Shown in pieces: positions 18,804-54,617 of a DNA stretch of 64,000 bases. Position 1 is the stretch's first letter. Every line of letters begins with the position of its first letter. The stretch is from positions 98,394,001-98,458,000 of the forward strand of contig OZ241826.1 in NCBI GenBank assembly GCA_965202585.1, given 5' to 3'. Origin of the DNA: Thalia democratica. Taxonomy: Eukaryota. A model generated the notes under the pieces. It was not told the DNA's origin, made no database searches, and was given only the letters and a program-made list of their open reading frames with translations. The position numbers were made by a program, and so were the translations under genes.

Positions 18804-20850
18804 CAGGGACGTAGCTTGGTAGGTTTCTGCAAAAAGCTTGCTTTTATTTCAGCTTGAAAAGACTCTGCGTTCTTAGCTTTTAGTATTCATTTATACTTAG
18901 TTATGCACTTCTGAGAGATAAATTTGACATATATCTACTCTTTAGCACTTTAAGTGTCGTAAGAATTAAACGAAAATTAAATACATCCAAATTGTAACAT
19001 TTAAGGCGTTAAAGCTTTATTTTGTCAAAAAGCTACAATGCAAAATTGATACTAAAGGAAGCTGTAGCTTCAAAAATCAAAGTCATACAACTTTTTGTTA
19101 CAAAAATTTGCATAACTTGTTGTTACTATTGACTACATAAAATGTTTTATTTTCAAAACAGTATAAGTGTTTTTGAGTTAAATTGTGATTTCTTGTACTT
19201 TTTTTTAATGAAGGTTGGGACTTTTAATGGGTAGTTTTAAGTATTGGGTACTTTTAATTGCTGCAATTTTGCAAAAAAAGTACTCAATATTTTGCATTAA
19301 CTTTACTTTGGGTAGTTTTCAAGATTAAACTTTGTGAACAAAATTGCTGTCTAGGCCTATAATAAATTCACTTTGTTTATTTTTCTAAATATGAAAATAA
19401 TTGTATCTGAATTAATCACTATGTTAACTAAATTAAGGAAATATAATTTTCAACCTTGATATTTTTTGTGTAAGTTACAGTTTTAAATGAGACCACAAAT
19501 TAAGCTATTGACTTTTAAAATTTTCATTTATAGTTTTTTGATGAATTAGAGTTATCATATTCTATAAAAATTTATTATTTTATATGTAGAAGTAGTTTAA
19601 AAATTACAGATATTTTGGTGATTTTTGTTTTAAATACCAGATTTTTTCAAATTTGTTAATTTCACAAATTCAAGGTTTATCCAGTTTTTGTTTAAACTGT
19701 CAAGTTCCTGAATTCCAGGTGTTTTGGCCACCCTGCTCAAGTTTTAAGGAAGTATTCCTTTCAATATTTATTAATAAAATTAAAAAAAAAAAAAGATGAC
19801 AACTAAAACCTACTGTACTCTCCTATTTTAATATTACATCAAAAATTGGTTTTGGTATAAAATATCTGTATTAAGATACTTGTAGTTTATTTTAAAATTT
19901 ATTAAGTGACATCAACTTGTAATAAAAGTGATCTACACCCTTCCTGTACCAAGGTGGCTCCTAAAGTTTTTTTGAAATTTCTTTCAATTTTTTTAAATTC
20001 AGCATATTTTTTAAGTGCGAGTCTTACTGACTTTTCTAGACAAAATAAGTGATCAGAGTTTCAATTCATTCTAGGATTTTATATAAAATTCCAATATTCC
20101 CATAAGCATCTAGGTTTGACGGCCATTGGCCACCCTGTTTATCTTATTTCAAAATTTAAAAAGGTAGCTTTTTTTGAAGTACATAACTTATGTATAATTA
20201 GTTCAAATTTTTTTATGACTTAAATTCATCAATGAACTATAAAAGAAAAAATTTAAAAATCATTTGTTTAACTTGTGTTTGAATTTAAAATTATAACTTA
20301 TAAAAAAATTTTTCTATAATTTTGTTAACACAAGGAAGTGTTTAGTATTGTTCAATTGTTTTATTTCAGATATGATTATTTTCATATTTTAAAAAATTAA
20401 AAAAGTGAATTTGTCATAGGCCTAGACATCAATTTTCTTTTTTTTTACTAAGTTTAAGCTTCAAAACTACCCAAAGTAAAGTTAATGACGTCATCAAAAT
20501 ATCGGGCATTTTTTTTGCAAATTTGCTGCAATTGAAAGTACCCAATATTAAAACTACCCATAAAAATTCCTCCCGTTTAATAAAATTTAAATTTTTCTGG
20601 GTTTACACAAGTGGCAAGACATAAAGAGTCATAGGGGGTGTGGAGCAAATTAAATTGCCTTGTATACAGTTATCACTCGTACTTCAACATTCCATTTTTC
20701 ATGGGTTAACATACTGCATTTTTTTATATTATATTTTAATAACATTAGAAATAGTTTAAATTGCTGTGTTTCCGCTAGTACGTTATCACGAGTTATTTCA
20801 GTGTTTTAACTTTTGCAGTTCGTATTTTTTTTGAGCTAGCTACGTCCCTG
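18804..20850. mobile_element. hAT-like non-autonomous element with 13-bp TIRs and 8-bp TSD, containing nested insertions
   Basis: CAGGGACGTAGCT at 18804 and AGCTACGTCCCTG ending at 20850. A perfect TSD GTTCTTTG is at 18796-18803 and 20851-20858. Confidence 0.85.
19210..20580. mobile_element. Foldback-like element with about 400-bp inverted arms, nested inside the hAT element
   Basis: 19210-19610 is the imperfect reverse complement of 20160-20580. Examples: atgggtagttttaa..attgggtactt vs aagtacccaatattaaaactacccat; gtctaggcctat vs ataggcctagac; cattaactttactttgggtagtttt vs aaaactacccaaagtaaagttaatg. The spacer holds two TGGCCACCCTG ends (19725-19735, 20127-20137). Confidence 0.8.
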
Positions 20851-21794: not shown

Positions 21795-22445
21795 ATGGTT
21801 TTAACAACAATAAGAATCACACGGAGGACGTTTAAGGCAATAGAAATTGCGGGTAGTGATGTGTGGATAAGCTTAGAGGTTGATCTATTTGACGAAAATG
21901 ACGCTCAAATTGACAGTAGAACGATTACCTATCCAAACATTACAGAAAACAGTGTTTTAGAAGACGATTTGAAACTTTTCCGTTTGAGTCTTTGGGAACC
22001 GCATGTTGTCAAAGCTGTATATGAAATGCAACGAAACGATTCGGGCGAAGAACAAACAGCAGAAATTAAAGTGCCTCCTCACATTTCGTGCAAAACAACT
22101 CAGAAGCGCGAGGTTCAAGCATCATCAGCAACAGGGATCTCTCAGTCTGAACTGAAGCAAATGTTGGCGGCTCTCGATGGTGAAAGCGAAGTTTTGAAGC
22201 GATTTGAAGATCACAAATGTTCCGTGTGCCTCAGTGATTACAAAGAGATCATTGAAGAAGGCCATCACGTCGTCGCGCCCTCCTGTGGACACCCGCTGTG
22301 TTGCTCGTGCGCTGATAACATTGTTGAGAGCGAGAAGAAAGAGTGTCCGCAATGTAGGGAAGGGATCACTGCTCAGTCGTTCAATCTCGTCATGTTCGAT
22401 TCTGATTTGGAGACAGATGCAAGCAACCAAAAGCTGTACTTGTAA
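21795..22445 (+). CDS. Intronless C3HC4 RING-finger protein (putative E3 ubiquitin ligase), 216 aa
   Basis: Uninterrupted ATG-to-TAA ORF with a C-terminal CSVC-x17-CGHPLCCSC-x11-CPQC RING motif. Visibly GC-richer than its flanks. The N-terminal 140 aa are not recognised. Confidence 0.85.
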   Translation: MVLTTIRITRRTFKAIEIAGSDVWISLEVDLFDENDAQIDSRTITYPNITENSVLEDDLKLFRLSLWEPHVVKAVYEMQRNDSGEEQTAEIKVPPHISCKTTQKREVQASSATGISQSELKQMLAALDGESEVLKRFEDHKCSVCLSDYKEIIEEGHHVVAPSCGHPLCCSCADNIVESEKKECPQCREGITAQSFNLVMFDSDLETDASNQKLYL

Positions 22446-27374: not shown

Positions 27375-30300
27375 ATGGACTCACAAAACATAAACAGTGA
27401 AACTCCTGCTGTTCCATCAGTAGAAAACAGTACTCTACAAACTCCAAACAAAAAATCCTTCGAAAAAGTTATTACTTCGGCACCTGCTAAAAGAAATCCT
27501 TCAGCCACAAACCGACTGAACTTGAAGCAAAGTAAGCCAAGTGCTCCTTACAACCCAAATCATACAACTTCACAGCTGGGGTCTCCTTTAATTCCTAATA
27601 AAAATTGTCAAATGCAGCACTACTACAACTTTGAAAAGGGCACATAAGTATATCCAGTATCCAACAACTACGCAATTTGCTGACCAACGCGGATCGATAA
27701 GCCGATATTCAGTTCACCCACAACGAAGTATTATAAACACTGAAGTGCAAAGCGCCATGAATTTTCCAACAAACAGTATGTGAAAAATATTAACAGAGTG
27801 TGAAAATTTTTAGTATTTAAGTCTAAATTACTTCTTTTTTGTAAGTTTGTCAAAAGTTTACTAAAGATTACTTAGCAATAGTATTTGATAAATGAATATT
27901 TTTCACTTTTTTAATACATGTCTAGTATTTTCATTTACTTATATTATATCAGATAGATATCTGAACAACAGACAAGCAAGCACTCTAAGTGGAGGAAAAG
28001 CAAGGAGGTAAGATAGTTGCATAAATAATAAATTGTAATAAAATTATTTAAAGCTAATAATGAATAATTATAGGCCACGAACAAGTTACACTTCAGAACA
28101 AAAGAAAGTTTTAGAGTATTTTTACCGCAATGTAACTACAAAACCAAGTTATGAGCAAAAAGTGAAGTTAGGACGGCAACTAGGCAAAGAATTTGATGTT
28201 ATCAGCGTAAGAACAAATGTTTTGTTTCAATACTTAAACCTATAAGCTTTTAATTCAAACTGCCTTCCTGAAACTTAAAATTTACTTTTTTTTGAGAGTT
28301 TTATTTTTTATTTTTTGAATTATTAGTCGTTTGATAATTATAGCTTTTTAAAAGTTGAAAAGTAAAAAAAGAAATTTATTCAATAAAAATTAATAAATAA
28401 ATTAGTAATTAGTGTTATACAAAATCTAATACAAACTAATACTAGTATGTCTGTTAAATTTTCAGGATTTTCCAACACATCATCAAATGTTAGATTAGAT
28501 TTATCATAACAACTTTTTTATACGTTACAGTGCTACTGTTATGAGATTATTAAGGTACGCACTTTGAACCAAGGCAAAAGTGCATAACTTAAAAAATTTA
28601 CAGTTTAAAGTTAATTTTTCAAATTTCACACGGAGTAATATCTTATATTTACATACTTTTTATAAAAAAATGTTTTCTTTGTAAAATTTATTCTTCAGTT
28701 AAAATATTTTCTTCAAAAGTTTGTTGAACTATTCATTATAAAACTTTGTTTTAAGTTTTTTGTAAAATTGTTAATCAAAAATTTCTTGATACTTAGTCCC
28801 TAACTTGTATGGGTGCGTAAAACTTAAAATGCGTACCTTAACGATGTTTATACTGAACATACAAATGTCTCTATTGTAGAATAAAGTCTTACTCAAGTCA
28901 GCACATTGAAAAACCCTTAGCTCAAATTAAGTAAAGATAAATTTTTAAACAATTTTGTAGTCTATAATAATTACATAAGTTAATTTTAGATCTGGTTTTA
29001 TAACCATAAAGCAAATGAAAAGAAGATGGAAAACTCTAATCAGAACAAGCAGCCAAGTGCGTACGAAATGAAGAAGAGCGAAGGTGTTTTTTTACTTGCA
29101 ACTGTTGCGATTATATTTAGTATTTAAATCTTAATTATTTCTTTTTGTAAGTGTGTAGAAAATTAAGTAAAGATTACTTAGCAACAGTATTTAATTTGTA
29201 GATATATTTTGTTGTTTCTAATACATGTCTAGTACTTTCAAATACTTATATTATTTAAGATGGAAATTCGAACAATAGACAAGCAAACACTCTCAGTGGA
29301 GGAAAAGCAAGAAAGTAAGACAAATGTTTTGAAATAAATTTAAATTACTTGCTAATGATAAATAAAATTAATAAAGATCACGAACTGTTTATACTGAAAA
29401 CGAAAGAAAAATTTTAGAGGATTTTTACCGCAATGTAACTACATTACCAAGTTATGAGCAAAAAAAGCAGCTAGGACAGCAACTAGGCAAAGGAGTTGAT
29501 GTTATCAAAGTTAGATCAAATGTTTTTTTTTTCAATGCTTAAGCTTTACTTAAACTGCTTTCCTAAAAATTAAAAGTTTACTTATTTTTGAGAGTTTTTT
29601 TTTTGAATTAATAATTTATTGATAATAAAACTTTTTAAGTGTTTACAACTGAAAAATAAATTAAGTTTTAATAAAAAACAAATAAATCTCTAAATTAGTA
29701 ATGAATGTTATATGAAATATAATTATATGATTAGATTTGTCATAACAATTATTTATAAATTACAGTGCTACAATTATGTGATCATTTAAGTAGGCACTTT
29801 AAACAAAGGCAAAACAGTAAAACTTATTTAAAATTTTACAGTTTTATATCAATTATACAAATTTAACACAGACTAATATTTTATATTTATTTATTTTCTA
29901 TAAAATTTTTTTTTTTATAAATTTTATTCTACAGTTGAAATGTTTTTTTCAAAAATTTGTTGATTCATTTTATAATTTTGTTTTAAGTTTGATTTTTAAA
30001 GTTGTTGATCAAACATTTTTTATACTTAAACCCTAACTTGCATAGGGCGTACATCTTATTCGTATTTCAACGATGTTTCTTCTGAACTTACAATTGTTTC
30101 TTTGTGCAGAATAAGTTCTTTCTCAAGTCAGCTCGTTTAAAAACGAACCCTTAAATGAAACTAAATAGTGATAAAAACGTTCAAAATAACTTTGTAGTAC
30201 AGAATTATTACTTTAAGTTTATTTCAGACCTGGTTTCTTAACCAAAGAAATAAAGAAAAGAAGATGAGAAACAACAAACAAACCGAACAGCTATGTGCTT

Positions 30301-31835
30301 ACGAAACGATGAAGAACGAAGGTATTTTTATTTTACATTACTGTAATTAATTATTTTTCCTTAGTTGCTTGCAAGCACAAATACATGGTTTAATTAAAAA
30401 CTATGTTGACATATAAGATTGAGTCTAGAGGCTAAGCGGTTATATGTATACTTAGTTTTTTAGTTAACTTGTTAGAATTTATGTTAAGTTTTGTTCACTT
30501 TTGATGTTTGTGGTTGTATGACTTACTGGTTGTTCAATTACAATTCTGATGTAAAAATAATTAAAGTTGTTGTAATTTTATTTAAAACATATAACATTTT
30601 TTATTTGTAAGATAAGCTTTGATTAGTAAGAAAACTTTTTTGTAGAGAATTTTATCGAATTTAAATAATATGTGAGAGTTTTTAAAGTCTTTGAAAATCA
30701 AAGTAGGTTTTTTCTATATATAAAACTGGATTAATTGTGTATATAGCAGAAAGTATCAAAAAAAAAAGTTATTACCTCTAGTTGCTAGAAAAAAAATGGC
30801 TAAAGGGGCTTAGGTTATAATTTTTATACTTTAGATATGAATCCAAAATCGAAGATGGAAAGAAACGAACAACCAAAAAGACTTCCTACACAATCTAACC
30901 CAACTCCTCAAACTCGTACTATACAGACTAGCCAAACTACCCCTCGATTTCCTAGTTAGTATTTATTAGTTGTTTTACAGTTTAGATTAAATCAGTGTTA
31001 CACTGTCTTTAATCTATTAGTATTTATTATGTATAATTTAGAATACTAAAATAAGTAACAGTACAACTTTAAGAAGTTTTGATTTATTGTTAAAAACAGC
31101 ACTTAGCGGTCATATTTAAAGGATAAAACAAATAATATTCAATATCCATGTTTGTAAAACTAAGACTTGTTATTATTGTTTCAAACATTCACATGTTGTA
31201 CGTTTGATTTTTACTTAGTCAGTCTGACCAGCTGTTACGTCAAAAACATTTGCTTTGATATAAACTAAACTTAAATAAACACTTATAAGTTTTCTAACGC
31301 TTGTACACTATATACTCTAATTTTTTAGTAGTCAAAAGTAATAACTGTTTTTACTTGTAAAATTGGAAGCAGTTTTTTACTCACCTAGATGAAATTTTTA
31401 GCAGCATACGTAAAATAGCTTTATGGTTAAAAGCAATTTTCAAAAATATCTTTGTTTAAAATATTGATACCAATTTAAACATGTATAAATACTAAAACAG
31501 TTAACTTTTGTCAACTACAATACGATTGGGGATTTTATCACTACCTCAACTTTTTGGTTCAAAATCAATTTCAAATACCTCCTTGCGGTACTACTCAATG
31601 GTAAGTGTTAGTTAGAAACATATGCATTAACATTAAAAAAAAATTTCATAAATGCGTTGCTTATCTTAGCTCATTTAGTTTCTTCTTAGCGAGATCAAAT
31701 AATTATGCCATTTTTATTACTTTCAGCTGTGCAGCTTGCCCAAGGAAAATAATGAACTTGCAGTTGCAGTTACATTCAGCAATGCTTCAAAACCTCACCT
31801 CTTCGCAAACTCAACCACCTCCTGACTCACAATAA
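27375..31835 (+). CDS. Multi-exon double-homeodomain protein (two divergent PRD-class-like homeoboxes)
   Basis: GT-AG exons splice in frame: ..27775 | 27953-28007 | 28074-28206 | 28990-29083 | 29260-29314 | 29377-29509 | 30228-30321 | 30835-30954 (or stop at 30959) | possible last exon 31735-31835. HD1 is ARRPRTSYTSEQKKVLEYFYRNVTTKPSYEQKVKLGRQLGKEFDVIS^IWFYNHKANEKK. HD2 is ARKSRTVYTENERKILEDFYRNVTTLPSYEQKKQLGQQLGKGVDVIK^TWFLNQRNKEKK. Both have a phase-0 intron between HD positions 46 and 47, typical of the PRD class. The 5' end is uncertain: ATG 27375 needs a one-base frameshift near 27590-27645, or the start is the in-frame ATG at 27757. The 3' end is also uncertain. Confidence 0.85.
27800..30330 (+). 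repeat. Intragenic tandem duplication of a three-exon unit (period about 1.24-1.31 kb), introns included
   Basis: Paired exons have identical lengths (55/55, 133/133, 94/94 nt) and phases. The introns are also alignable (e.g. taaagattacttagcaa.agtattt and taatacatgtctagta.tttca at about 27860-27950 and 29170-29258). Confidence 0.9.
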
Positions 31836-34800
31836 GGATGAATTACAGTTTTAGTTTTCTTATCGTGGACAAAATCTTAAACTGTATCCATTGAGTATAA
31901 ATCGATAACCGTAAAGTTTCTTTTTTTGTACGTCAAATTGACTTTTCAAACATTTTTTTATGTTTTTGTTCAATAAACAGTATATAGATTATATGCTTCT
32001 TCATTTAGGTTTTGTACTGTGTTTATATTAGGTTTATGCAACTTAAAAACACTTTTTCGAATACAGTGATAAAATATAAAGTATAAAAATAAAATTAAAA
32101 TAAATTGGTTAAACTAAATTTAATTTCTATTTATATTAATACCTTACTGCAATTAAATATGTATACGAGTTTTTGTCGATAAGTAAAATCTTAGAATAAG
32201 TTCATAGAAGAAAAAACTGTTCCTTGAAAAAAAAAAAAATGTTGAAAAAGAGGTTGAAAAAAGGCAGATGCGTTCAGATATTAAAATATACTAAACAACC
32301 AATTTTAAAATTCTATCACATAGTAAAAATTTTTTGCTAAAGTTTTTTGCATACGAACTAAAGCTAATAATATTTAGTACTTTTTCCGGCTATGATAACT
32401 TATATGCTATATAAAAGTGCTTGCATCTAGAGAAATGAAATTATTTATAAAAACGTGTTATATGTATGTGAGATATTCATCAAAAGGTCAAAACGAAAAC
32501 TGATAAATCCTTACTAGCTTTCGTTTTATTGATGTCTTTTACGCAGAGGTGCAGGCTAGCTAATGTTAATATACTAACTGAATACTTGAAAGTGTTTAAC
32601 ATAAAATGTTTTGTTCGTAAGAATTATCTGATTAAAATCTGGTTACTATGTTGTTACAAGTACAAGACATCAGCTTGATTTTATGAAGAAATTTAGAATT
32701 AAGATACTGTTAATTACTAAATATAAATAAAATATTTTCTATTTTCAGCAATAAATAACGTCTTTTCACCTTTATACAGAATAACAACTTGACAATAAAA
32801 TTAAACTACACTAAGCATGTGTGTAAAATATATGAAAGAGCGAAATAATAAACCTAGGAAAAGAGTATTTTATTAATTTTCTAAAGTTTTAGTATTGAAG
32901 ACATCATTACAAAAAATTATTCTGCTATCAACATCAACTGACCAAACTTGAACATCTTTTTATTAAACATTAATAGCAAGTAACACTTATGCAACAAGAT
33001 AGTTTAAAAAATTAAATTCGAATTGGTTTACAAATGCTTTATCGATAAAATAGTCTGGCTTAGGCTCTGTACACATTCCTCATCTTTTAATAATTTATAA
33101 CCGACATAAAAACAAGACGGATAAGTACAATAATTTAGGCAATTTAGATAATAAAGTGTTTACAAAAGTCGTTTAATAAAAAGTATTGTACGAAAAATAT
33201 TTTGTTTTATTAATTATCTTAACAAGTTTTCAACCAAAAAAAGGTTCAAAAGTTTTTTGACCAAAACCAATGTTTACATTTATGAGATAATTTTTTGCTA
33301 GAAGTCGGAAGGTGTAGAATTTTGATTCTTTGAAAACCCGATCACTTGAATAAACAGTAAAACTGTTTTTTTTTAATTGCATTAATAAATTTTAATATGT
33401 TTTTTTCTTTTTTTTTTTTTAATATTTACTTTTTGAAATTAACAAATTTAAAATTATTAGAATAAAGTTAACAAATGATGGCCTTTATTTAGTTTTGTAT
33501 AGAAAAAAAGTTGTTATCTATTAAAAAACAGCCAAAATACATTTAATTTTAAACGTTTTGAGAACCATATCTAAAAATAAAACTTATATAAGAAATTAAT
33601 CACTAGCTCCTATTTTTAAGTACAATGATTATTATATTTGATGATACTACTGTATATAATTAATGCAAGCATTCTACAGCTATTAAAATAATACAGTATA
33701 AGTCATAAAGTCAAAATAAAAGAAAAACTTTGAAAAAAAAACTACCTAATTTTAAATTTGCTTATCTTAAGATGCTTTATAATTCATTAAAATTAGAAAT
33801 AACTTAAAAAAAACTGTTCCTGACGTTAACTAGTCGTAGAAATTACATTAAACTGTATCTGTGGAGCATGACTCAATAACCTCATGTTTTCTTGTACACC
33901 AGTTCTTTAGACTAAAATTTTTGAAAGTATTTCTATCGTTCATTGAACTTGTATCCAAGTAAAGATTAAACTTTTAATAAATCTTTAAGGTTGGCTTTAA
34001 GTTGAACTTTGATTGAAACCGTGAACAAAACAAAAATATTTTTAATAATTCAAGCTGATCGATAAATTATAATAGTGGTGGTTTGTTTAGATTAATGAAA
34101 TATAATGAGAGTTTTGTGCATAATATAACTAAACAAGGTATATTTCATCCTCTTTGAATAATTGTGATTTTTCTTACCACCTTGTAGCGCAATAAAACTT
34201 TTTCTTGTTTCATATGAAACGTAGTTACGACAAAGCTAAAATAAAAAATTGTAAACAATTAAATACAAATATGCTAAATATTTGAGACAGCTAAAGTAAG
34301 TATAATAATTATGTAGGTATTTTTAAATGTCCTAGTGTTAAAAATAGTTTATAGATTAAAAAAAAGTAAAAGTAAATGCACTTAAAACTTAAATAATATT
34401 TAAAAATAAACTATCAGTTTTAGACAATACTAATTTGAAATACTTCAGAACAGTAACAACTGTAAAACTAGTTATATAAAATTTGTTATATAGAATGTAT
34501 AATTATCAATACATACTGTTATAACATTAAAGTAAATATATAGAGATAAGAGCTTTTAAAAATTTGTTTAAAAATAATTCAGACTTTATTATAAAATTGA
34601 CATCTTTACAGTCAAATAAAACAGTGTTGTAAAATTAAAAGATCATAAAATAGATTAAAGTTTAACATGATACTTAGACTATCATTATTAAAAATGGTTT
34701 TAATAAACTAAACTTTTCAATTTTCATATAATAAAAACTTAAAAGTACATACTCAACTTATCTACATACAAAAAAAGAATTATACGACACTTTAAACAAG

Positions 34801-39556: not shown

Positions 39557-40792
39557 CTAAAACTTTAGTTCATGCAAAAATTCTACTATTTGACGTATAA
39601 AAATGTTCTTCATTTGATTAATATGTTCCCTCTGCATCCTAATAACTTCTACTTCGGCTGCTCTCAACACGTCATTTACTTCCGCTACCTTCACATCACC
39701 CTCATTTTCCTTCACTTTCTTCTCGTCAACGTTGTAATACGACTTAATCGTCGGAATAAAATTAAAAAGTATTTCTCGTACCACCTTTTTTACGCTGTAA
39801 GTGCACTCTGTCTCCACTAAATATTGAGGATCTACCATAGAGTGATGGCACAGGTAGATGAATTTGTTGCTTTTAAGAAAGCTACCACTTTGTACAATTG
39901 ACTTTTTGCTGTCACTTTCGTCATTAACATTAGCTTTCAAGTTTTTATTTTTTGTTTGGTAAAACTCAGATTCCATCCGCTGCAGAAATGGCTTGTCTGA
40001 CATATATTTCTGACATAAAGAAGAGTCTTTTTTTTTTCCTGCATCTACAAAATGTTTCCCGTTGAACTCTATTATTCTCTTTTCGATGAATCCAACCGCA
40101 CTATAAGAGCCAGGAATGTTTTTTTTCTTTTGTTTTCTAGGTGCTTTTGTTATGAACACATGTTCTAATGTCTTTACTACTCCGAGGCTAGTGCAAAAAC
40201 TACGCCCATAATTAAGAGCAAATGGGTAATAGTTTGTTAGGTAAACTCCCGGACCTTTCGTGCCTGCTTCCGACGGCAAAAATCCATCGCATAAAATTTT
40301 GTCGATGTTTTTGCTCTTGGTCCCGTGGAGAAGCAGCACAAACTCTTCATCAGTATTCTCTTGATGGTCACCAGCTTCTTGTTCTTCTTCTTTCTCTCTG
40401 CCTTCATCCTTAACCTCCATTTTAACGGGCATTACACGAAAGACTTTGTAGCTTGGCTGCGAACGGGGCTCAACGTCGAGCTTGATCTTTTTTCCAGGTT
40501 TTTCCCTTAAACCTAATGCTCGCGCCAGCAAATTGTGATCGCCGTCGTCCTCATCAAGAAGTTTTAAAGAATATCTTGGGTTCTTGCAGTTGACGGTGTG
40601 CGTCGGGGAATTCACATTTTTCGAGCTGATGAGTTCTTTGAACACGCTCATGATGCTTCTTAGTGCTTCCGGATGCTTTTCTTTTTCTTCTGAATACTGT
40701 CTTTCTCGTTCTCCAATAAAGGCTTCAACTGCAGCTCTCTTCGCTTCTGGGACGGATTGGATGTATTGATTTCTTTCTTGAGGAGTTAACAT
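39557..40792 (-). CDS. Intronless PARP/ARTD-family ADP-ribosyltransferase-domain protein (probable mono-ART), 411 aa
   Basis: LLLHGT (His codon 40325-40327), GPGVYLTNYYPFALNYG and a C-terminal FIYLCHHSMVDPQYLVE strand match the ARTD H-Y pattern. There is no Glu at the expected third catalytic position. The ORF is uninterrupted. Confidence 0.8.
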   Translation of the reverse strand: MLTPQERNQYIQSVPEAKRAAVEAFIGERERQYSEEKEKHPEALRSIMSVFKELISSKNVNSPTHTVNCKNPRYSLKLLDEDDGDHNLLARALGLREKPGKKIKLDVEPRSQPSYKVFRVMPVKMEVKDEGREKEEEQEAGDHQENTDEEFVLLLHGTKSKNIDKILCDGFLPSEAGTKGPGVYLTNYYPFALNYGRSFCTSLGVVKTLEHVFITKAPRKQKKKNIPGSYSAVGFIEKRIIEFNGKHFVDAGKKKDSSLCQKYMSDKPFLQRMESEFYQTKNKNLKANVNDESDSKKSIVQSGSFLKSNKFIYLCHHSMVDPQYLVETECTYSVKKVVREILFNFIPTIKSYYNVDEKKVKENEGDVKVAEVNDVLRAAEVEVIRMQREHINQMKNIFIRQIVEFLHELKF

Positions 40793-50611: not shown

Positions 50612-51960
50612 TCACCTCAACTGGGAAACTTTAGCGCAACCGAACCACTTGCTGGACTTTGTCCATTCACACGACTCCGACGCCCACGTTCCATTGACGA
50701 CGTCATAAAAGAACACTTTACTCAAACGACTGTACAGCACGACCAGTCTGTCGCCGATCAAAACGGCTCCGGAAGGCAGCACCATGTTGCTGAAGCTTTC
50801 TTCGGGCGCCTTCAGCAAAACAAACTTGCCGCAGTTTGAATCGAAAACTTCGCTGCTCCTTTTCCACCCTCCGACCGCGAAAAGCTTGCTCCTCGCCGCA
50901 ACCGACTTGTGACCGCACCTCGGTTCGACCATGCCGGGCATCGGCGACCAGGCGTCGGCCGCGTGGTCGTAAGCCTCAACAGATTCGAGCGTTACGCCGT
51001 CGTGCCCGCCGCTGACAACCATCTTTCCTTGGAACGCGCAGCACGCGGAGAGCGGCCTGGCCCGGCTCACCTCCGCAACGCCCTTCCACCTCGAGTACCT
51101 CGTGTAAAATTTCCAGCACCTTCTTCCTCGCCACCCGCCGCCGACAACGTAAACGTCGCCCATGAAAGCGCACGCGCTGAAACCGCTGTTATCGTCGGGC
51201 ATTTCGCCCACTCTCCCGCTCCGCCGAGCGGCGAGAATCTTTCAACGGAAAGAACGTTGTTGCCGTCGGCACCCTTGCCACCGAGCACGAAAAGTTCTCG
51301 GTCGTTGCAAACCACTTGGAACATTGTTCGACCTTCCTTCATCTTCGGCATGGCGGTCGGTTCGTTCAAGTTGTTGGCGTTGACCCTGCGCACGTCGCTA
51401 ACGACACGATCTTTAATGTCAACGCCTCCGCAAACTACAACGTCAAATTTCATGTGGTTGCAGTACCTGCTGGCGGAAGGGGAATTTTTCAAGCCGACTT
51501 TGTCACTTTTGAGTTTTTTTATGGTAGAAGCACACTCATCGTTGACGGCAAAGCAAAAATTTGCACTTAACAAACTGCTCAATGCATGAACCGACAACAA
51601 TGAACAACGGACAGCGAACAAAAGGCGAATTGCGTATTTGGTTCTTTTGCTGAACTCGTGACACAGCCAACTGTTTGCCGCGCTTGCCACTTGCAGCTCC
51701 GAATCAACGTTCAAGCGATCGCTGGAAAACACTTTGACGACGGAAAGGAAGTCGAGCTCTCGAAATTTTCGTGAGTGGGCGATTGAGGAGAAGCGGTGTT
51801 CTAAGAAAGTCAAACATAGTTCTGACAACTTCGGGAGGCGGTAAAGCCGTGACGCGAAGTAGGCTGCTGCTGCGTTGCTTTCGTTGAATTTGTCTTCGAA
51901 GTGGATTTCGTTTTCCAAGCCTTCGCTCAGAAAAATTTTGTTTGCTTTCAAAATTGGCAT
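50612..51960 (-). pseudogene. Intronless BACK-Kelch repeat protein with a single-base frameshift (pseudogene or sequence error)
   Basis: ORF 51067..51960 has a BACK domain (ELDFLSVVKVFSSDRLNVDSELQVASAANSWL) and Kelch repeats (VVVCGG, LFVLGG). ORF 50612..51211 continues them (VYVVGG..W, MVVSGG..VEAYD...W, LFAVGG). Restoring one base between 51216 and 51217 gives SPLGGAWRVGEMPDD and joins the two. No BTB domain is evident. Confidence 0.85.
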
Positions 51961-53320: not shown

Positions 53321-54617
53321 TCATCCTACAGAATCAGACCCGCTTAGAATATGACTTTCGTAATGCGAGCGTTTCGTGTTCGTGTAAAACATGATATAAA
53401 GCTCACCGCTGTCGCGAAAACAAGGCTCATCTTCTTCAAACCACTCATCATCGTCGAACTTGTACCAATTTCCATTCGACACGTTCTTGCATTTGGCAGT
53501 GTAATGATATATCTCTCCATCCAGCGGTATGAAGTTGCATACACCGTACAAATCGTACTTGTCTATTTCTTCATGTCCTTCGTAAAAAGCGTTCATATCA
53601 AGGCCGTTCACAGGGAACTTAATTTTTTCTCGGTCATTTATGTTTGTCCGAGGAACAAAAAAAAATTATAACTGGTGGCAGTCGTGAGATGGTCTTATGG
53701 TTACTTTGTTGATCACCATATTTTAGTGCTAACATACGTTCTAGGTCTAAATATTCACCTGTTTTTTTCGTTTCATCACGCACAAGTCTCACAAACATGT
53801 TTGAGTTTCAATACATATCACCGGGACAAGGTTTGTTTGTTACGAGTTGAAAAATTCTTTGGACTTCAGACGTAATATTTTCACCGCGGCCATCAAATTC
53901 TGAATTTAGATGATTGTGCAAACCGTCATTCAAAAAATAATCACAGAATTGTTTAGCACATTGCGGACCACCGTCCATTAGATTTTCTTCTACAGATAAT
54001 TCTTTAAAGCACTCTCTGAAGTCTATTGGTTCTAGATAGCTATATTGACCGGTCCAAAATCCTTTCAACAAAACGGCAAAACATTGTGCAAGTCTACCAT
54101 TTGTATTACTGTTTCGGTTCAAGTTTTTTTTGTAGTCATTGGATTTAAAATACTTTGCCAGTTCAACCGTTTTAAACATGCATTGGAGTACACAGTTCAT
54201 AAAGCATGAGTTGTCCAAGTTTTTCAAGCCACAAACCCCCTTTTCTAAACTTAAACCGATTCTGTTTTGCTTCACTACGTTTTCTACGTCATCAGATATA
54301 TTTTTATTACCAATTTCCACTTCTTGTTTCTCGTTTTCGCTGGTTTTAATCTCTTCATGACATTTTTTTCAGTTTCGTTCGAAACAACAAAGTTGCTTTT
54401 CAACTCAACTGTACCATTTTTTATTCTCCTATAAAGTAGTTGTTGTTTTTTGATGGAACCCAACGTATTTTCGTATAAAACTTCATCAGGTTGCATGACC
54501 AGCTCTTCTATCACGCTGATGACGTCATCAAACGGGCTTTCGTCGACGTACTTGCACAGACTGTAAATTGATTTGTAAATTCTGAACGTTTTCGTTTCTT
54601 TCTATTCTCACTAGCAT
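53321..54617 (-). pseudogene. Intronless, compact USP (peptidase C19) deubiquitinase with frameshifts and an internal stop
   Basis: Cys box GLKNLDNSCFMNCVLQC (Cys 54204-54206), QQD-like box PQCAKQF...DGLH, then TISRLPPVIIF / KIKFPVNGLDM and a His box YDLYGVCNF...YHYTAKCKN...WYKFDD...YIMFY. Lesions: TGA at 53808-53810, +1 in an A9 run (53657-53665), -1 in a T7 run (54363-54369), and a probable further shift near 54600. Confidence 0.85.

Follow-up and report, generated by a model that had tools for sequence, protein, structure and literature searches.

The window analysed here is a 64-kb stretch of DNA from Thalia democratica (GenBank assembly GCA_965202585.1, contig OZ241826.1, positions 98,394,001 to 98,458,000 of the forward strand), with a G+C content of 26% and no N. 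Between positions 27375 and 31835 it holds a homeobox locus in which a block of three exons lies twice in tandem. A repeat search of the window revealed a two-copy tandem repeat, in which 27799 to ~29098 matches 29106 to ~30329 with 76-89% ungapped identity and in consistent order (families D1-D20). The unit starts are spaced by 1303-1307 nt at the 5' end and by 1229-1238 nt at the 3' end. The two units and their six exons are as follows.

27799..29098, forward strand: duplication unit 1 (~1.3 kb), made up of part of the upstream intron, exon a1, an intron, exon b1, an intron and exon c1; defined by repeat families and alignment.
27953..28007, forward strand: exon a1 (55 nt), encoding a linker and the N-terminal arm of homeodomain 1 (..NNRQASTLSGGKAR); AG acceptor, GT donor and frame.
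28074..28206, forward strand: exon b1 (133 nt), positions 3-46 of homeodomain 1, which comprise helices 1 and 2 and, in loop 1, an additional residue; Pfam PF00046.
28990..29083, forward strand: exon c1 (94 nt), helix 3 of homeodomain 1 (IWFYNHKANEKK; Y50, N51, K53) and a linker; splice model.
29106..30329, forward strand: duplication unit 2, made up of the inter-unit intron, exon a2, an intron, exon b2, an intron and exon c2; defined by repeat search and alignment.
29260..29314, forward strand: exon a2 (55 nt), encoding a linker and, for homeodomain 2, the N-terminal arm; aligned to a1 without indels at 84% identity.
29377..29509, forward strand: exon b2 (133 nt), positions 3-46 of homeodomain 2; Pfam PF00046.
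30228..30321, forward strand: exon c2 (94 nt), helix 3 of homeodomain 2 (TWFLNQRNKEKK; L50, N51, R53) and a tail; splice model.

The units were compared by segment alignment. The exons are identical at 84% (a), 80% (b) and 73% (c) of positions, the two long intron segments at 80%, and the a-b intron, which is short, at 62%. At the 3' edge of the duplication, identity drops to 41% directly past exon c (29084-29105 against 30322-30343). All 12 splice sites of the six exons are of the GT..AG type. Each unit consists of 55 + 133 + 94 = 282 nt (94 codons) and is entered and left in the same phase, and the frame therefore continues from c1 into a2, across 176 nt of intervening DNA. The spliced 564 nt (187 codons) contain no stop in the coding frame versus 13 and 14 stops in the other two. 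In both units the b/c intron is in phase 0 and separates the codon of homeodomain residue 46 from that of residue 47 (DVIS|IWF and DVIK|TWF). Unit 2 has no in-frame Met ahead of the end of its homeodomain and no first exon of its own; it is thus readable only if spliced behind upstream exons. The six-frame listing of the locus gives a single long open reading frame (ORF), of 61 aa, at 28060-28245. The earlier note on this DNA had described a two-homeodomain frame running through a duplicated three-exon unit with alignable introns, visible in the ORF track as a 61-aa fragment only. The splice models, stop counts, intron identities and ORF listing agree with this description in full, and the ends it gave, together with the junction from 29083 to 29260, fall exactly on splice sites and in the reading frame. 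A transposon origin of the locus was considered and rejected: neither direct nor inverted repeats were found to flank the gene within 15-45 kb, and the flanking exons 1, d, e and f (see below) have no second copies in the window.

The identity of the domain was determined with the Pfam Homeodomain profile (PF00046), which matches both b exons; the earlier note had proposed this check. Exon b1 alone, which covers 44 of the 61 residues, scored 24.2 bits (E 3e-5; curated cut-off 22.9), and exon b2 alone 21.6 bits (E 1.9e-4). The two b exons share 66% of their amino acids, and both homeodomains keep R5, Y8, L16, W48, F49 and N51. With respect to the helix 3 signature W48-F49-x-N51-x-R53, homeodomain 2 (WFLNQR) retains all four residues and homeodomain 1 (WFYNHK) has K53. 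The positions that govern specificity are Y50, H52 and K53 in homeodomain 1 versus L50, Q52 and R53 in homeodomain 2. Judged by these residues, the recognition helices of both homeodomains appear degenerate (Y50 with K53; L50). In the Pfam alignment of exon b, 37 residues occupy 36 profile positions, and the alignments with HESX1 and LHX4 need the same one-residue gap, from which a homeodomain of 61 residues with the additional one in loop 1 follows.

Relatives of the locus were sought in protein and metagenome collections. The true matches among 1.84 billion representative proteins were three, all of them short predicted ORFs that run from exon b on into its intron, and a profile of six sequences found eleven short metagenome ORFs of the same type, and nothing else, in a set of 5.8 billion proteins. 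A word-indexed protein search with the 61-aa ORF gave no candidate, a scan of JGI metagenomes, where the organism is evidently not represented, with the family profile gave 441 pattern matches with 0 confirmed, and Rfam had no match on the window. The contigs of the relatives, which stem from marine metagenome assemblies (Tara Oceans and others), have a G+C content of 27-28% and align to the window, introns included, at 66-81%. Since they are marine metagenomic and alignable in their introns, the family is one of marine planktonic animals. The donor context of exon a1, GTAAGATAGTTG, is invariant in the aligned rows of relatives L001 and L002 and is present in L003 as well. In L004 (2205 nt), exon b is followed 758 nt on by an exon c, IWFQNRRQKERK, which is homologous to exon c1 and encodes a canonical WFQNRR helix with Q50; the 1056 nt past this exon c contain no second a/b unit.

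For the two window units and six metagenomic relatives, a maximum-likelihood tree was computed on exons a and b, the intron that separates them and another 60 nt from the intron that follows. The window units are sisters with support of 95/95 against the six relatives, and the duplication is therefore private to the lineage of the window. The branch of unit 2 is about twice as long as that of unit 1 (0.19 versus 0.10). The canonical single-domain state with Q50 was likely that of the ancestor. An independent, lineage-specific origin without DUX orthology had been proposed in the earlier note, and both the sister units and the single-unit L004 uphold it. A separate internal tandem duplication, of ~249 nt, was seen in positions 1-554 of L003, where the end of exon a, the intron, the first 69 nt of exon b and part of the pre-a intron precede full exons a and b. 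The truncated copy (124 nt) would break the frame if spliced in. This duplication could be real, which would make the family prone to duplication, or it could be a chimeric join in a contig of 1.9x coverage.

The class of the homeodomain was examined next to its position in the family. The residues common to both units and ten relatives (R5, Y/F8, L16, Y20, P26 and L34) lie at core homeodomain positions. The exon-b profile of the family (12 sequences), compared with PDB chains, matched STENOFOLIA (WOX; 1.4e-3), HESX1 (4.5e-3), LHX4 (6.5e-3) and GSC (goosecoid; 7.6e-3); two of these top four are PRD-like, and the margins between the matches are trivial. The intron between positions 46 and 47, present in both units and in L004, is reported in many PRD-class genes (PMC2211742), and it is suggestive of that class, not diagnostic. 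A PRD-typical domain has 60 residues and S, K or Q at position 50, and here 61 residues with Y50 or L50 were found. The proposal that the locus belongs to the PRD class holds as to the 46/47 intron and is not supported as a class assignment, for which the intron is the sole basis and the sequence matches are mixed and weak. Nor is the extra residue a class character according to Burglin and Affolter (PMC4901127), who note that additional loop-1 residues arose many times, for example in unc-39.

The duplication had been taken for a young one, and this part of the proposal did not stand. Divergence between the units amounts to 21.3% for the exons and 21.9% for the introns. Contigs of one sequencing run (X3) carry the label of a second organism and are ~5-8% divergent from the window; one piece among them spans 29013-29441 and thereby reaches from the last part of c1 across the inter-unit intron and a2 into b2. 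The unit junction already existed in that organism, and the duplication is therefore older than the split, so that 'young' is a relative term.

Downstream of unit 2, three further exons are predicted from splice sites and open frame.

30835..30954, forward strand: putative exon d, P/Q/T-rich and in phase with c2; splice sites and open frame only.
31501..31600, forward strand: putative exon e; AG/GT sites, with the frame open through d-e-f; from sequence alone.
31727..31835, forward strand: putative last coding exon f, ending in TAA; splice site and open frame.

An AATAAA lies downstream of exon f at 31972-31977, and a contig of the second organism has a 6-nt in-frame deletion in exon f at 31767. 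Pfam had no match on exon d. Over the segment 30882-31062, which takes in the last part of exon d, lie 11 contigs whose depths add up to 2239 versus ~50 for single-copy DNA (~45x). All 11 contigs read A at 30946, where the window has G. This segment is a high-copy repeat elsewhere in the genome, with no second copy in the window.

We estimate at about an even chance that the locus encodes a two-homeodomain protein. According to this reading, the locus is a lineage-restricted and fast-evolving homeobox gene, and a three-exon block inside it, coding in turn for the N-terminal arm, for helices 1-2 and for helix 3 with a linker, was duplicated in tandem. Splicing of c1 to a2 would place both units in one mRNA and yield one polypeptide with an N-terminal region, homeodomain 1, a linker of ~33 residues, homeodomain 2 and a P/Q/T-rich tail. 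The predicted product, if made, would be a transcription factor that touches DNA through two non-identical homeodomains.

Several observations weigh against this reading, and one of them lies in the exon expected to begin the protein.

27375..27775, forward strand: probable first coding exon (exon 1), with an ATG at 27375 and the donor ACA|GTATGT after 27775; homology to L001 and L008.

Compared with L001 and L008, the assembled exon 1 is shifted in frame by +1 at the A5 run 27600-27604. In L001, residues 1-66 and 79-138 of a single 148-aa ORF match the window in two different frames, and in L008 both parts of exon 1 fall within one ORF. Conceptual removal of one A gives a 133-codon ORF that is colinear with L001 and L008, and the phase of exon 1 fits exon a1. 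Owing to the shift, an ORF of 90 codons comes to its stop at 27647, and the homeodomain frame follows after it; past the shift there is one in-frame ATG, at 27758. The shift could be a true recent frameshift or a homopolymer assembly error. A 37-nt intron at 27581-27617 that would repair the exon was judged unlikely: the other introns measure 62-783 nt, and the shift maps exactly to the A5 run. In all three sequencing runs that contain the locus (found with the whole locus or with exon b1), a contig lacks 117 nt of exon 1 at 27389-27507, a loss of 39 codons that keeps the frame; it may stem from a paralogue, or from an allele that lost this piece in frame.

The remaining adverse points concern domain recognition, expression and constraint. 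Pfam did not match c1 and c2 individually, whereas exon c of L004 was recognised alone at E 0.0019. The exhaustive profile search of the 1.84 billion representatives returned no long, spliced or annotated protein with this domain; the risk, named in the earlier note, that automated annotation would miss such a gene has thus materialised. In the three runs, depth stays even across introns and contigs extend over exon-intron borders, which means that the runs are genomic DNA. Overall, the ratio of nonsynonymous to synonymous change (dN/dS) between the units reaches 0.84; in the homeodomain it is 1.27, and across the family it ranges from 0.57 to 1.50. The differences by codon position are 21/22/17 with no excess at the third position, and exons have diverged as much as introns. 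These data indicate weak constraint at the level of residues. Amino-acid constraint is weak, or mixed with diversifying change.

The reading frame tells of a different kind of constraint. No indel separates the units in 282 exon nt versus 23 events in 930 aligned intron nt (~7 expected, P(0) ~9e-4), and a stop-free frame had a simulated P of 0.017 after 60 random substitutions drawn from the intron spectrum (for unit 2 taken alone, 0.064 for stops and 0.010 for indels), all of these being rough figures, as the intron indel rate is probably too high for exons because introns are richer in homopolymers. We argue that for most of the period after the duplication both units were probably coding, the frame being kept while residues changed fast.

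The locus can also be read as one in decay. It would then be a pseudogene, a formerly functional double-homeobox gene that was recently disabled as a decaying member of a multi-copy birth-and-death family. Such a fate would account for the shifted exon 1 with its early stop, for the degenerate helices (R53K, Y50, L50) and the unmatched c exons, and for the dN/dS of ~0.84 without third-position excess. The presence of a multi-copy family is suggested by three further observations: the genomic runs contain contigs at 90-95% identity over parts of the locus; the piece 31690-31926, which includes exon f, has ~4x single-copy depth; and a mosaic 358-nt contig, found in all three runs at ~92% identity, joins 28872 to 30117 and returns to 28935 (28623-28872, 30117-30166). 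Together they suggest further paralogous copies elsewhere in the genome. Nevertheless, after 21% divergence the six homeodomain exons have 0 stops, 0 indels and 12 of 12 splice sites. The frameshift sits in a homopolymer, a hotspot of assembly error, and the ATG at 27758 could start a protein that retains both homeodomains. We regard a disabled copy as an unlikely, though quite conceivable, explanation.

Another possibility is that the units serve as alternative cassettes, in transcripts of the form exon 1-unit 1-d or exon 1-unit 2-d, and that single-homeodomain isoforms are made instead of the double form or beside it. Both units have 282 nt and identical phases, and skipping either of them therefore preserves the frame; exon d begins with the AT dinucleotide phase that a1 and a2 share. 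Nothing speaks directly against it, but the c1 donor and the a2 acceptor are intact, and default splicing should therefore take in both units. Moreover, a mutually exclusive cassette of three exons would be unusual. This arrangement is improbable in our estimation. The notion of two separate single-homeodomain genes, arranged head to tail, is the usual result when small homeobox genes duplicate in tandem, but it is scarcely credible here, as the duplicated block begins inside the intron before exon a (27799) and omits exon 1 and everything upstream, unit 2 has no in-frame ATG ahead of the homeodomain end, and tblastn found no second exon 1 in the 64-kb window.

A wider reading of the double-homeodomain gene was also considered. 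The locus might belong to a fast-turnover family of PRD-like homeobox genes that this marine animal lineage evolved for itself and that repeatedly makes two-homeodomain proteins by internal duplication, as a convergent counterpart of DUX and ETCHbox genes, possibly with a use in the oocyte or early embryo. We consider this extension quite improbable.

The neighbourhood of the gene was surveyed for long ORFs with domain matches.

21795-22445, forward strand: RING finger ORF; long ORF with domain match.
39557-40792, reverse strand: ORF similar to the PARP catalytic domain; weak domain match, 25.6 bits.
51067-51960, reverse strand: BACK plus Kelch ORF; long ORF with domain match.
53808-54320, reverse strand: ubiquitin hydrolase (UCH) ORF; long ORF with domain match.

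The BACK-Kelch ORF lies in the one part of the window that is rich in G+C (50-52 kb, 44%). An inverted repeat at 19337-19415 and 20361-20439, with 79-nt arms that are 86% complementary and 945 nt between them, may represent the ends of a small transposable element.

The locus is unannotated and probably coding. The internal duplication that gives rise to a double homeobox is an event of an already known kind, of which this locus is a new instance. If expressed, it would be a clean, datable two-homeodomain factor born by duplication of an internal exon block outside mammals. The state with one domain can still be seen among relatives, and the two copies have diverged at residues of DNA specificity. 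An expressed gene would make it possible to test whether tandem homeodomains gain composite binding sites, as in DUX4, and would show whether fast-evolving orphan homeobox families are general in animals with derived embryogenesis.

In the length of its domain, the locus resembles the atypical homeodomains, exemplified by TALE (three extra residues), C. elegans unc-39 (one extra) and plant WOX, as it likewise has one extra residue between helices 1 and 2. Alignment of the WOX protein STENOFOLIA with the family profile requires no gap, and STENOFOLIA has WFQNHKA where homeodomain 1 has WFYNHKA. The similarity to WOX is weak (E 1.4e-3). The NHKA motif is convergent, since L004 has NRRQ at that place. 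Independent inventions of the double homeodomain are known in Caenorhabditis HOCHOB and in the double homeobox genes of Dictyostelium (Burglin and Affolter, PMC4901127). These share with the locus the repeated origin of two homeodomains within a lineage, and their sequences and taxa are unrelated to it.

The eutherian DUX genes (DUXA, DUXB, DUXC, DUX4) have two homeodomains, as does the locus at the level of the reading frame. DUXA has an intron in each homeobox (PMC2211742), and DUX goes back to an ancestor with a single homeobox (PMC9882399). In contrast to DUX, the units described here are sisters of each other, their relatives are known from marine plankton metagenomes only, and the locus is no orthologue of DUX. 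The linker has ~33 residues here versus ~15 in DUX4. The C-terminal domain of DUX is absent from exon d, the one 3' exon scanned with Pfam, and residue 50 is Y or L.

By analogy of structure, mouse Crxos is the nearest counterpart of the locus. Crxos is a Tprx1-derived ETCHbox gene of the PRD class, in which a three-exon unit was duplicated internally in the Mus lineage, and its transcripts comprise one long form with two homeoboxes and one short form per duplicate (PMC5787275). The locus has, like Crxos, six exons that come from a duplicated three-exon unit (the Crxos homeoboxes are split over exons 2-3 and 5-6), and both are marked by fast evolution and by single-homeobox relatives in sister taxa (PMC5787275). 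They differ in that the locus belongs to another animal group, with no detectable orthology, and that its homeodomains have 61 residues versus 60. The transcripts of Crxos are documented, whereas the gene described here is known from genomic DNA alone. As a precedent, Crxos indicates that an internal duplication of this type can yield a transcribed two-homeobox mRNA.

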